Source: Dimorphilus gyrociliatus
Taxonomy: Eukaryota > Animalia > Annelida
Direction of reading: 5' to 3'
Assembly (NCBI GenBank): GCA_904063045.1
Contig: CAJFCJ010000006.1
Coordinates: forward strand, 1,527,601 to 1,591,600
Length of the DNA: 64,000 nucleotides
Part shown: positions 50,782 through 56,700 of the stretch, piece by piece
Position numbering within the stretch: the stretch's first letter is position 1
How the letters are laid out: every line of letters begins with the position of its first letter
The notes under the pieces: generated by a model
Seen by the model: only the letters and a program-made list of their open reading frames with translations
Database searches by the model: none
Told to the model about the DNA's origin: nothing
Made by a program: the position numbers and the translations under genes

Positions 50782-53700
50782 ATGCTACAAAATCCTAATC
50801 AAACAAGAAAACCAGTGTCTGCACCTGTTCCAATACCGAGAAATCCTCAACCGAACGCCATATTTTTAGAAGGGTGAGTATACATGGACTTTTCAGACCT
50901 GAACGAATCTAAGTTTATGTATAAGGATTGCTAAGGCTGTAGCTAGCTCATCGGTGACCATATAAGAACTGCCTCAATATGAGTGAATCGCAATTAAAAA
51001 GTCGAGTTTTTTAAAGCTTGAGTTCTATTAAGCATTTACGGTGAAAGTACTAAAAAGAGTCACGTGGTCGCCATATTGCAGTTACGGCCTCAGATCTTTA
51101 ATGATAATGATTTCGTCGGAGGATATGTTCTGCAATTTCACAGCATACAATGATGGGGATTATAACTGTTGGTGAGTCAGATGAGTCAATACTTTTAGGC
51201 CTGGTTATTCATATTTTTGATAAAAGATTAATATTAAGTGAGCTCGAGAATATTTGTCTAATAAAACGAAATGGCTCGTTGAACTTTGTTTACGCGGGAT
51301 GACGTAAATTAACTCGTCCCCCATTCATTTGGTGACGCGCATAATTAAGGGGCCATCGTAATCCAATAGGGGCAAAACAATAGGGCTTGATTGCAGGGCG
51401 ACTCCAATTATGTAACCACTGGGCGCCACATGGCTATGTAATGTATACTATAAACTTTCCATCATTTCCTACGACCTTTCGTAGTTCATTCACGGGTTCG
51501 TTCAGCGTCTGAAAAGATGCTCGAACACCAAATATCTTATCGCAATCATGTTTACAGGCTTAAGTCGGCTGGACAAGTTCCCCAAGTAAACAGAGGTAAA
51601 AACAATTTTTTAAGTTCTGTCTCTTTAATATTACATAAGTGTAAAATATGTAAATAGGACCAGAGAAGCCAACAAACGTTCACACGAGCCAACAGGCAAA
51701 CTACAACATTTCAGTAAGTTATATTTTTATTTGATTTTATTTGTTTTGCATTTAAATGATGACTTAGTTATCCCTGTCCGATTTTAAATTCACTATGAGG
51801 TAACAATTACGTACTGAGCAGTTATATCATATAAAATTGCTATCATTTGGAAATATTTCGATTTACATGGTAATTTTCTTTACAGTTTGGCACCAACTCC
51901 AATCCAAGTCAGATTCAACCGTCAGTTAGTGGCTCATCACAAGTAGAAGGCGGGGGGTCGGTTGGCGGCCAAGTAGGGCAACCCTACAGTATGCAAATGT
52001 ACTCCGGTGCTGCTCCTCCTCCACGATCGAACCATCCTATTCCTCAAGTAAGTTCCTTCTCTTTATTTAGAGTAAAACACGCTTCATTAATTTGCGAAGT
52101 GTGAGTGTGGTGATTGTTCACTGAGAGTTTGACAATTTGCATCAGGTGTTGCCGTCTATAAAATCTTGGGTGAGACTTCAAATTTTTTCACTTATCCCGT
52201 AGATGCTTTCGTTCGCTTAGTTTTGTCGTTGTTTACAATTCTGTTTAAAAAATAATAATGTATGAATATCTTAGGATTGTTCGAATGAAAAACTTACAAA
52301 TCGCTTACTTAGTTTATAAAAAACTGCAATTTTTTTGTCACTAAGTAAATCAAATTTTGTCATAAAATGTTAGCTAGACAAATTAACAATAATTTACTTT
52401 TCAGAGGTTCGTTAATCCAAATGCTGGTTCAGGGAGTGGAGGAAATCGGGGACAGCGTCAGCCAGCTCAAACGTACCCTCCTCCTCAGCAGCAACAGCAG
52501 CCTGGTTTTATGGTACCTTCACCTTTTATTCAACCAGCACAGATATTTATCCCACAACAAGCGACTTATATCCAAAATACACATCGTATGCATAACCCAA
52601 ATCAGCAGCCCCAACAATATATTCAGCAGCAAGTACAGTATCCTCAAAATTACGTTAGCAGTAATTCCCAACCGCAGCAATTGCCATACATGAATCAGCC
52701 TTATCAGTCCAATTCGTACACTCAACCTAACCAGCAACATCAATCTGTTGTTAGCCATGTAACATCGACGCAACCGCAAAACAATCCCTATCAACAGCCT
52801 GCTCAACATCAAATGCTTGTGCAAAATCCGCCTCAACAACCCCAGCAAAGGGAGAAAAAAATAATACGGATAATAGATCCTTCTACTGGAAAAACACTTA
52901 ACGACGAAATTAGAACAAATCGAATGTCTTCGCTTTCTGTCACCTCCACGAATCAAGTGGAAGAAGTCAAAGATCAAACTACTGAAGTTGCTGATGATAC
53001 AAAGAGTAAAGTTTGTCAAGAATTTGCAGCCTTAGTAGCAGCCCGGTGCAAAACCGATCAACCTCAGACAAGTCAAACCGAAGATTCCAAAAGTGAAGAA
53101 TTAGCAAAGAATGAAGAAGAAGCAGAAGAAGAAGTAATAGTAGTTGAAAAACCTGAGGAGCCAAAAGTGGAGGAGAAGCTTGAAGAAACTAAGGAAGCAG
53201 TCACTGTTGAGCCTGAGGAAAAGCCAGATGAAGAAGTAAAACCTGAAGAACAAGAAACAATAGTGGAAGAAAAACCGGAGAAGACAATTGAGGAGAAGTC
53301 ATCCGAAACTGAAGATAAAGATAGTAAGTTTTATTACAGTGTCGTTTGGAAACTTTTCAATGTCTATATTTGAGTTTGTTGCGCTCGTTGACTGTATAGC
53401 GTCGTGTAAAATTCCGATTCCGGCGGCTCAGACACCGTCGGCTAAACAGCATTCAAAGAAAAAGAAGAAAAATGGTAAGTGAATCAGTGAATAAGCCGGA
53501 AGTATAGAATCCTCGCTTCGTTTCCCTCTGCTTCTAAATATGCTTGGGATTTTTTACCTGCAGATATATTTTAGTGCATTTAAAAGTATATGTGTATTTA
53601 TGTATAGGAAGGATAAAAGAATTTAAAAACTTCAAATGTAATATGCGCATGTAATTAAACTACAATTATGTATTTCGAGTAAATTTATCTTTACAGTTTG

Positions 53701-56700
53701 TATATATACATATGTATATATGAATATATATAGAGATATTGAATAGGTCAAACATATACCGTACATATGCATGTTTGGCCTATTCGATCACGTGATGTGG
53801 TGGTGATGTAGCAGATGGTGTTTTTAGCCTATGGTGCGGCAGAGTACTCGATATAGCCGAGCGGCTGTTAGAGTCGAAGCTGTCGGCCGATAGACATATT
53901 TTTGTTGGGTTGTGTAGATGTTACTCAGGAGCGATATTATATGATATTAGTCAATCTTATACTACTTACTCGTCCGGTAAATGTGTCATTATAGAAGTTA
54001 AGTTCGAAGTTCCACATTATATTTGCTGATGGATTAGATAGTCATGGCGAGACGTACGTATAATATTTTCTAGGTGGTGTCACGTGATATTACAGAAAAG
54101 TAGGACGTATAAAAATGTGTTCGAACGAATTTTTAACACTTCGCTTTTTTTACCGTTGATATTCTGAGCAAAATTAAATGGCGTCCGACATTGAATTTTT
54201 CTCGTGTGTTTAAAAAGGTTCAAAAGGAAAGAAGGCTCGTAAGAATAAGGAACAGAATAGTCCTACAACGAATACTACCGGTGCTATTGCTGTCGACATT
54301 GAGATAAAACGGGAGGAACGACCTTCGGTAAGTTTCAATAAAAAACATCGTAGTTTCGAATTTCTTTCATTTCACAATGATTATGTACCTAAAGCTTTCT
54401 CCACCAACTTCCGAGATACCAGAAGAAATTAAGGCTTCTAGTTTGGTTGAAAGTAGTCCTGAAATAAACGATACAATTAAGAAAATTGAAGACGAAGTTT
54501 CTGAGGAAAATGGTGTCACACCATTGTCTGAATCTCCTCAGGTCGTTACGGAAGACGATTCCGAAAGCCAGGAAAAGCCTGTTGACGATGAAACAGAGGA
54601 CACTGATTTGCAAAGAAGCGACAGTGAAGAGCAGTCTACAGACCCGCCATCTTTAAAATATGATTATAAAGAAAATCAATGGAGTCCGTTGAATACTGAA
54701 GGAAAAAAACAGTATGATAGAGAGTTTTTGATGCGTTTACAGTATGATGATCTAAGTAAGAAGAAACCGGACGACTTGCCCAAACTAGACATAATCCTTA
54801 CCCAACCTATATGCAATGATCAATCAAATACATCAACCGGAATGGAAAGACAAGACTTTCTTCCATATTTCCAACAACAGACACTTACTTCTGGGAGAAT
54901 GTCTGGTTCAATGCACAGACAAAAGTCTAGAGATTTCAATAAAAATCGAGTTGAATCTAGAAAGGTAATCCAAATTTCTAGAGAAAAGGAGGTTCAGTTT
55001 GTGAGAACTGCGAACGCTTACAGACCCCACTATCTAGGTGATGGTTCTGATGAAGATAGGCATGATGAGCGGTTATTCAGAAACGTTAGGTCTATGTTGA
55101 ATAAGTTGACACCTCAAAACTTCAACAGTTTAATCAATAAATTTAAGGAGTTGGAAATTAACTCAGAATCTAGGATGGTTGGGGTCATTAAACTGATTTT
55201 TCAAAAGGCTATTGACGAGCCAGCATTTAGTGTAGCTTATGCCAATTTGTGTAAAAGTTTATCTAATATCCTAACGAATACTAAAATGCAATCCAAGGAG
55301 GGTAAAGAGTTTACGTTCAGATCTGGTTTGTTAAACCGCTGTCAAGAACAGTTTGAAAAGAATAGAAATGATGATGAAATTCTTGAGAAAAAGAGGGGTG
55401 AATTGGAACTGGCTGAAAGTCCAGAAAAACGAAAAGAACTCCTTATGGCTTTAGAAGAGCACGAAACTGTTTCGAAGAGGAAATATTTAGGAAATATTCG
55501 GTTTATAGGTGAACTGTTCAAACTAAAAATGCTAACTGAGAATATCATGCACGGATGTCTATTTGAATTGCTCAAATCTCACGATGAGGAAAAATTAGAA
55601 TGTTTATGTAAGTTAATGAAAACAATTGGCAAAGAATGCGATCATAAACAGGCAAAGCCTAGGATGGATCAGTATTTCACTCAAATGCAGAAAATTGTTG
55701 AACAAAAGAAAACCTGCTCTAGAGTTAGGTTTATGTTACAAGATGTTATTGAATTAAGAAAGAATATGTGGGTGCCAAGACGTGACGAAAATGCTCCCAA
55801 GACAATCGCACAAGTTCGTGAAGAAATGGAAAGGGAAGCTCAAGAAAAAGCTGTACATCTGAACGCAGCTGCTAATAACGCCTCTAAGAGGAGGTCTATT
55901 CCCAATATTGTCTCTGGAATGAATAGTAAGTAAATTTAAAAATTGTTACACATTATTTTGAATTTACATTAAATCTTTCAGATCGTCACAGTGCTAGTGG
56001 TCCAAATGTGGGTGATGATTCTGGATGGCATAATGTCCAACACAGATATAACTCACAGAGAGCTAACGAAATGGACCGAAGCAGAATGATGAATATTGCT
56101 TCCCAACATAGTAATAAAATGACTGATGGTAATATTCAATTGGGACCTAGCAAAGCTGGCTGGGGAAGAGGAGCAAGCGGTGGACGCTCTCATAATAGTA
56201 GTCAAGACGACACATCTACAACCTCTGGAGCAAACAAGTTTTCTGTTTTACAGCAACATGATGAATTAAGACCTGCCGCTCATATTAAAGGTGCTAGTCG
56301 ATCGGCTCAACTTCCACCTAGACATCAAAGTAAATTTAGCGGACAATCAAGAGGACTTAATTCCAGACCAAGTGCTGAGCAAGAACGTGGCAAGAGGGAA
56401 GCCTTGGAAATGGCAAGAACAGTGGCAACTCCACCAAGGGGCAATAGCAGAGAATCAAGTAGAAGTAGAAGTGGTCAGCGTGCTCCAATTGATAAGGCCA
56501 CATCAGCCGTATCTGTAGAGGTACCGGAGATGTCTGATGATGAGTTGGAGAGAAGAATTAAGACTTTGGTAGATGAATATATACAAGTACACGACTTAAG
56601 TGATACTAAGGAATATGTTAAGGAAATGTTAAGAGCAAACGTTAAATCCGACTCTATTGTCAATAAGATTCTCCTTAGTGTTTTAGAGCGTTCGACTGAA

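Follow-up and report, generated by a model that had tools for sequence, protein, structure and literature searches.

A conserved 24-nucleotide alternative microexon in the disordered N-terminal region of an annelid eIF4G

The eIF4G locus and its microexon

We analyzed a window of 64,000 nucleotides (nt) from the genome of the annelid Dimorphilus gyrociliatus (contig CAJFCJ010000006.1, positions 1,527,601 to 1,591,600 of the forward strand; coordinates below are those of the window), which contains a gene for the translation scaffold eIF4G with a 24-nt cassette microexon at 52146-52169. This microexon is a genuine, selectively maintained alternative exon in the disordered N-terminus of the protein. 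The downstream exons of the gene encode the eIF4E-binding domain, MIF4G, MA3 and W2, all recognized with Pfam, MA3 and W2 being located in later exons; because of this domain set, the gene is assigned to the eIF4G1/3 type. The 5' part of the gene was delineated from splice joints in RNA contigs (Table 1).

The microexon consists of the codons GTG TTG CCG TCT ATA AAA TCT TGG on the forward strand and encodes VLPSIKSW. The upstream exon ends with CAT CCT ATT CCT CAA (HPIPQ) at 52047; the sequence directly 5' of the microexon is ..GACAATTTGCATCAG, its acceptor reads ..TTTGCATCAG, with a TGC at 52138-52140 and the AG at 52144-45, its donor, GTGAGA, occupies 52170-75, and the downstream exon begins with AGG TTC GTT AAT CCA (RFVNP) at 52405. 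All three junctions are in phase 0, and the microexon, which is within the 27-nt size limit, has an open frame and preserves that of the message. Its sequence occurs once in the window. Counting from the putative ATG at 50782, the insertion follows residue 116, and the PABP-binding-type motif begins 148 residues past the junction; the stretch between them is rich in aromatic residues and has a Q/N fraction of 0.33-0.50 per 30 residues. An earlier note, made from the sequence alone, had described a phase-0 exon of this length and peptide in an eIF4G gene, with a TGC just upstream of the acceptor and a GTGAGA donor, between HPIPQ and RFVNP in the Q/P-rich N-terminal region 5' of the PABP-binding motif. 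This description holds throughout: the Pfam domains agree with the gene assignment, and the exon, its signals, its neighbors and its location are as it had given them.

Table 1. Features of the eIF4G gene in the window, with identity (positions invariant in all three lineages compared)
Feature	Coordinates	Strand	Identity	Basis
First coding exon, putative ATG 50782, MLQNPNQTRKP...	50782..50873	+		open reading frame and translation; joint 50872/3>51557/8 in X1, X7 and X2 contigs
Exon 2	51557..51593	+		RNA joints
Exon 3	51656..51713	+		RNA joints
Intron 3			0.55	
Exon 4, ends ...PPPRSNHPIPQ in phase 0, donor GTAAGT	51886..52047	+	0.75	RNA joints, translation
Last 68 nt of upstream intron: GU-rich stretch, weak polypyrimidine tract, UGC 52138-52140, AG 52144-45	52078..52145	+	0.96	conservation
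Cassette microexon, 24 nt, VLPSIKSW, residues 117-124 of inclusion isoform	52146..52169	+	1.00	RNA contigs, conservation
Donor GTGAGA and first 80 nt of downstream intron: U-run, then pyrimidine-rich ...CCCGUAG element	52170..52249	+	0.88	conservation
Remainder of downstream intron			0.63	
Exon 5: conserved RFVNxNAGSGSG start, Q/N-rich prion-like stretch, PABP-binding-type motif, acidic tail	52405..53323	+	0.64	RNA joints, composition
PABP-binding-type motif REKKIIRIIDP, anchor of all comparisons	52849..52881	+		sole N-terminal stretch aligning to eIF4G of other animals
Exon after intron 5	54218..54327	+		RNA joints
eIF4E-binding domain and MIF4G	54662..55765	+		Pfam PF21140, E = 2e-8; PF02854, E = 4e-55

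Transcripts with and without the microexon

Transcript data were taken from Logan contigs of four public runs aligned to the window, with one path kept per run. A contig of 4153 nt from run X1, a coral-sample metatranscriptome, joins 52047 to 52146 and 52169 to 52405, the two inclusion junctions that the earlier note had singled out as the check on its exon. The skipping joint, 52047 to 52405, is found in a 1632-nt contig from X7, the run of highest depth, for which the contigs are spliced and no library type is recorded. Messenger RNAs (mRNAs) of this eIF4G thus either include or omit the microexon. Identity to the window is 99% or more for both contigs; X7 matches the reference exactly, whereas X1 has two in-frame 3-nt insertions and two single-nucleotide polymorphisms and, therefore, comes from another, slightly different strain. 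Furthermore, a complementary DNA (cDNA) from a relative, L004, reads ..NHPIPQVLPSIKSWRFVNQ.., which is the inclusion form; given that this cDNA contains the 24 nt, a second lineage expresses the microexon.

Conservation among dinophilid relatives

Word search with exon 5 yielded fragments from three relatives, represented by four contigs. L001 and L002 are genomic loci that have an FtsJ neighbor in common with the window, L003 is a genomic locus from a Tara Pacific coral long-read metagenome (PMC13083261), and L004 is the spliced cDNA, from a Joint Genome Institute sample. Three lineages were compared, namely, the window, L001/L002 and L003. All 24 nt of the microexon are unchanged at every genomic locus of the relatives, and an invariant run of 62 nt (52114-52175) covers the microexon together with both splice sites. 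The adjoining intron flanks are also strongly conserved, far more so than the two neighboring coding exons, the remainder of the downstream intron or intron 3 (Table 1). Regulated use of the microexon is suggested by this pattern, that is, a near-invariant exon with about 70 nt upstream and about 80 nt downstream, set amid diverged coding sequence.

The reach of the comparison is defined by the searches. Neither exon 5 nor the N-terminal fragment of the relative recovered, by word search, an eIF4G N-terminus of any further annelid; the scallop N-terminal query retrieved one additional scallop only; and pattern scans of metagenomes with the genomic form (including the splice sites) and the cDNA form returned nothing beyond the contig already known. 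Compared with the near-identical genomic L003, the L004 cDNA carries a frameshift in the PABP-motif region, at about positions 1000-1052 (P0003 ends ..QQREKKNYKHN.., where P0002 reads ..QQREKKIISITDP..), which is probably an assembly or sequencing error.

The two mRNA forms could, in principle, reflect a strain difference or splicing noise, with the exon being constitutive or accidental in any one animal. Indeed, the including contig, X1, has small indels and single-nucleotide differences from the reference, the skipping contig, X7, has none, and Logan contigs are single paths. However, the inclusion form recurs in the L004 cDNA, and the conservation of the microexon, both splice sites and about 150 nt of flanking intron in three lineages implies that the microexon is under selection in the reference lineage, too. 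Accidental exons do not show such conservation, and we regard an unregulated exon as very unlikely.

Another possibility is that the conserved block harbors a different function, such as a structured RNA, a small RNA or an enhancer, and that the use of the exon is incidental. In favor of this, the same gene contains highly conserved blocks in introns 1 and 5 as well as an element in intron 3 that resembles a small nucleolar RNA (snoRNA; see below). Against such an embedded function, there is no Rfam family match in 52048-52404, the single-sequence fold of the block is unremarkable (z = -1.16), and RNAalifold detects no covarying pairs, which is due to the invariance of the aligned sequences. 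Moreover, the invariant run is centered on the exon and its two splice sites, and the exon itself is an open frame with 8 of 8 residues identical. A function unrelated to the exon is, accordingly, an extremely improbable explanation of the conserved block.

Splicing signals

The acceptor of the microexon differs from the others in the gene. Its pyrimidine fraction between -23 and -4 is 0.45, compared with 0.60-0.65 at four of the five other verified acceptors, and it alone, among the six verified acceptors, has a TGC within 30 nt. The UGC occupies positions -8 to -6 (52138-40) and is invariant in the three lineages, bearing out the earlier note, although about 11% of introns in this window would be expected to have a TGC among their final 15 nt by chance. 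The closest upstream AG lies at -20, which leaves no long AG exclusion zone. UCUC runs are missing from the 40 nt next to the acceptor, the lone UCUC-type run of the 98-nt intron being located at its 5' end, and a CUAAY branch point is likewise missing upstream of the microexon. Exons that depend on the eMIC domain are characterized by a long AG exclusion zone, a UCUC-rich polypyrimidine tract and a strong CUAAY branch point (PMC8797185); given the AG at -20, the lack of a nearby UCUC run and the lack of a CUAAY motif, the annelid microexon has none of the three.

These signals bear on the suggestion, made in the earlier note, that the microexon is neuron-specific and depends on Srrm234 (eMIC), providing for translation control specific to nerve cells. 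Several features fit: the exon is frame-preserving and no longer than 27 nt, the UGC lies 6-8 nt 5' of it within the invariant block, the polypyrimidine tract is weak and the flanks are strongly conserved, and the skipping path was the one assembled in the deepest run, X7, as expected if inclusion is a minority event restricted to certain cell types. Conversely, one UGC so close to an acceptor is not rare by chance, as indicated above, the long AG exclusion zone, the UCUC-rich tract and the CUAAY branch point of eMIC-dependent exons have no match here, and the RNA contigs derive from whole-animal or metatranscriptome samples. In addition, the microexon is included in two of the three whole-animal assemblies (X1 and L004), so it is possible that inclusion is not rare. 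Neuronal, eMIC-dependent use, therefore, is a tentative possibility that we do not favor.

Position relative to microexons in other bilaterians

For comparison, named eIF4G proteins were collected by a HMMER search with the MIF4G exon and by cluster look-ups; the vertebrate comparators are fish proteins and one fish locus. The vertebrate eIF4G microexon, which is exon 3 of the human gene (PMC12628316), has the consensus GGFRxxQ, lies in a prion-like domain and is regulated by SRRM4 (PMC10730148). In the fish set, protein isoforms X4 and X7 of sturgeon eIF4G3, and isoforms X1 and X3 from electric eel, differ solely by GGFRPIQ, inserted after ..RPAHHQ/ and before /FFQRSQ in sturgeon or /FLHRTQ in eel (the slash denotes the junction). 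Isoforms of eIF4G1 of the snakehead Channa argus differ by FAAGPRTLHQQ plus GGYRALQ, between ..SQPRQ/ and /AYFPNRP, and at the respective locus (L005), these peptides are encoded by consecutive small alternative exons, both in phase 0, of 33 nt (964-996) and 21 nt (2724-2744). The acceptor of the 21-nt exon has a CT-rich tract as well as three TGCs in the 30 nt upstream of it. The fish eIF4G1/3 microexon junctions lie 128-133 residues 5' of the PABP motif, compared with 148 residues in the annelid.

Sequence comparison provides no support for homology of the junctions. When the annelid N-terminus was compared with all retrieved proteins using BLASTP, the PABP motif alone aligned; likewise, the PABP motif alone aligned when the dinophilid profile was compared with the fish profile using hhalign (probability 0.8%). 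Smith-Waterman alignments of junction-centered windows with fish N-termini scored no higher than shuffled sequences (p = 0.23-0.60), and the junctions were not superposed. Multiple alignment of eleven bilaterian N-termini with MAFFT gave results that depend on the mode: with L-INS-i, the annelid junction is 1 column from fish ..PRQ/, 12 from HQQ/AYF and 2 from the scallop junction, whereas with E-INS-i, it is 20 columns from fish and 1 from scallop. By eye, the annelid and fish flanks have PRxxH..Q/ and x-aromatic-x in common, but these are post hoc, low-complexity matches.

Phase-0 junctions are also present 102-127 residues 5' of the PABP motif in scallop (..RAGPP/PFFSGQ) and octopus (..QTS/NYFTS), and about 135 residues 5' of this motif in sea urchin (..PRAYQ/PQIPQ). 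The likeness of the scallop and octopus junctions to the annelid one does not exceed that of shuffled sequences (p = 0.03-0.9), with the junctions not superposed, and the candidate was discarded. So was the match of sea urchin APRPQHPVPSQ to annelid ..PRSNHPIPQ, which is at an exon start, is not colinear with the other landmarks and is attributed to chance. A "hotspot" of eIF4G microexons was considered as well and rejected, given that the tick VFQ (P0186 and P0053, locus L011) and bedbug AFL (P0213 and P0215, locus L010) insertions result from 9-nt alternative acceptors rather than cassette exons. Among the predicted isoforms, short N-terminal differences are present in amphioxus (P0191 and P0200; QQVTPPL, 7 amino acids) and scorpion (P0177 and P0025; AGVPGNCD, 8 amino acids), both seen at the protein level only. 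Two beetle eIF4G proteins (P0210 and P0085) have an alternative N-terminus, MVSRFVNGP.. or MVSRFVT.., that resembles the RFVNPN start of the annelid exon 5; this may be chance, with about 0.2 four-residue matches expected in the set.

Descent of the annelid microexon from an ancestral bilaterian microexon that also gave rise to the one in vertebrate EIF4G1/EIF4G3 would account for the common gene, the common location in the disordered N-terminus, phase 0 on both sides in both lineages, the similar distance to the PABP motif, the proximity to the fish junctions under L-INS-i and the flanking residues that look alike (RFV in the annelid; AYF, FFQ or FLH in fish). The rest of the evidence argues otherwise: the exons differ in length (24 vs 21 nt), VLPSIKSW does not fit GGFRxxQ, the junctions are 20 columns apart under E-INS-i, the flank similarity is within the range of shuffles with the best local alignments not placed junction on junction, and profile and BLASTP searches align the PABP motif alone. 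Furthermore, no microexon isoform at the junction is present among the listed scallop, octopus and sea urchin isoforms of the clusters looked up. The eMIC programs of fly and mouse have only four exons at equivalent positions in common, and alternative exons often recur in orthologous genes, albeit at different positions (PMC8797185). Such deep orthology is, in our assessment, highly unlikely.

We distinguish the introns from the exon in this respect. Orthology of the annelid and vertebrate introns is a reasonable but not a favored possibility, whereas orthology of the microexon itself appears highly improbable, in agreement with the small number of exons at equivalent positions in the fly and mouse programs. 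The earlier note had pointed to a position resembling that of the vertebrate neural microexon and left a choice between deep conservation and convergence. The resemblance stands with respect to gene, region, phase and approximate distance to the PABP motif; it fails for length, peptide and flank alignment, and the intron alignment by which the note proposed to settle the matter produced no statistically supported flank match, with the junctions 1-20 columns apart depending on the MAFFT mode. Of its two options, convergence is favored, and deep homology is unsupported.

Other conserved elements of the gene

Several additional segments of the same gene are conserved among the three lineages. In intron 3, a C/D-box snoRNA-like element occupies 51753-51824 of the forward strand, where TGATGA and CTGA lie close to its 5' and 3' ends, respectively; it matches Rfam snoR38 with 33.2 bits, under the gathering score of 45 (E = 0.023). 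The element coincides with an invariant 36-nt run (51753-51788), and the rest of the intron is poorly conserved. In intron 1, about 500 nt (51020-51556) are 88-100% identical, which exceeds the conservation of the coding exons, and include an invariant run at 51407-51479. This block is covered by RNA contigs (X7, 50845-51496; X1, 51200-51381) and has no Rfam match; it might be a retained intron, an alternative 5' exon or a regulatory RNA.

Intron 5 contains two highly conserved blocks, 53320-53600 and 53800-54217, with an invariant run at 53354-53430, and an X7 contig (53314-54051) covers these blocks, with a depth of about 5% of that of the mRNA. Where exon 5 is read through into intron 5, a short tail, ..KFYYSVVWKLFNVYI, is added, followed by a stop codon; this tail is present in L003 as well. 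A donor-like GTAAGT (53475-53480) follows a Lys-rich reading frame within the intron. These blocks may represent a retained intron, a poison exon or a truncated isoform.

A different place of isoform variation was noticed in MIF4G. Predicted isoforms from fish (P0156), amphioxus (P0191), tick (P0186) and octopus (P0185) differ by a short insertion in the same MIF4G stretch, right after ..DLDFEKAK in fish (VCE) and amphioxus (12 amino acids) and after the corresponding divergent sequence in tick (16 amino acids) and octopus (NLIF). In the window, this place is in the interior of a single exon.

Discussion

The most probable interpretation of these observations is that the annelid microexon is a genuine, frame-preserving eIF4G cassette that arose independently of the vertebrate one, possibly within the same ancestral intron, and is controlled via its conserved flanks. 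Under this interpretation, the weak polypyrimidine tract, the UGC at -8 and the good donor would jointly control inclusion, which would place VLPSIKSW directly before the conserved RFVNxNAGSGSG motif in the disordered Q/N/P-rich tail. By analogy with vertebrate microexons, the inserted peptide, with its Trp, Lys and aliphatic residues, probably alters the interactions or condensation of the N-terminal tail of eIF4G in those cells that include it.

Four points weigh against this interpretation. First, with one path per run and X1 coming from a different strain, alternative use within an animal or a strain is not strictly established. Second, synonymous conservation in the microexon taken by itself is not significant (7 of 7 codons identical against a background of 0.69, P = 0.07), so that the case for constraint rests on the amino acid identity and the conserved intronic block. 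Third, the suggested part of VLPSIKSW in condensation is drawn by analogy alone. Fourth, an independent origin is not proven, being deduced from the lack of similarity in sequences in which similarity decays fast.

A more specific variant, in which the microexon is a conserved eIF4G switch proper to spiralians, restricted to neurons or another cell type and located in a vertebrate-like intron region, seems rather unlikely. If it were true, eIF4G tuning through microexons would either date back to the bilaterian ancestor or have evolved repeatedly.

EIF4G1 and EIF4G3 of vertebrates reportedly carry neuronal microexons. For few single microexons has an influence on synaptic translation and behavior been demonstrated, and those of vertebrate eIF4G belong to this small group; they are linked to autism and are regarded as vertebrate features. 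Our literature search retrieved no paper linking Dimorphilus with microexons, nor annelids with eMIC. As an alternative microexon, the annelid exon affects a disordered part of a protein that regulates translation; what makes it interesting is how it parallels the eIF4G microexons of vertebrates. With it, nature probably offers another, independent example of a central translation scaffold whose prion-like tail gains a few residues by splicing. If inclusion is specific to a cell type, one could test directly, in an animal that is small and culturable and has a compact genome, whether eIF4G microexon control is ancestral or convergent.

The closest known counterpart is the vertebrate EIF4G1/EIF4G3 microexon itself, which is also treated in PMC10551640; reviews state that these microexons sit in prion-like domains and promote condensation (PMC10730148 among them). 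The two systems have in common the gene family, the prion-like or disordered N-terminus 5' of the PABP motif, a phase-0, frame-preserving cassette of at most 27 nt with a UGC 5' of the acceptor, and an insertion that brings in one aromatic and one basic residue. They differ in that the annelid exon is of 24 nt and encodes the 8 residues VLPSIKSW, compared with 21 nt and the 7 residues GGFRxxQ, with no detectable sequence relationship between either the peptides or the flanks. A UCUC tract, three UGCs and a neighboring 33-nt alternative exon are present at the fish locus, in contrast to the one UGC and the lack of a pyrimidine tract in the annelid. Use of the vertebrate microexon is neuronal, SRRM4-dependent and regulated by activity, whereas the annelid exon is known here from sequence and RNA contigs.

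In a broader comparison, the microexon resembles the exons of the eMIC programs (Srrm234, SRRM3 and SRRM4; Torres-Mendez et al. 2022, PMC8797185) in size, frame preservation, a weak 3' splice site, a nearby UGC and conservation at the level of a clade, and differs from them in having no long AG exclusion zone, UCUC-rich tract or CUAAY branch point. Finally, the neuronal microexon of CPEB4 belongs to an unrelated gene and encodes an unrelated peptide, with a function that has been shown for vertebrates only (PMC11711090). It is, nevertheless, of the same size, 24 nt and 8 amino acids, and is likewise located in a translational regulator; mis-splicing of CPEB4 reportedly promotes aggregation of the protein, which makes this microexon an analogue for the effect that 8 residues might have in the annelid eIF4G.

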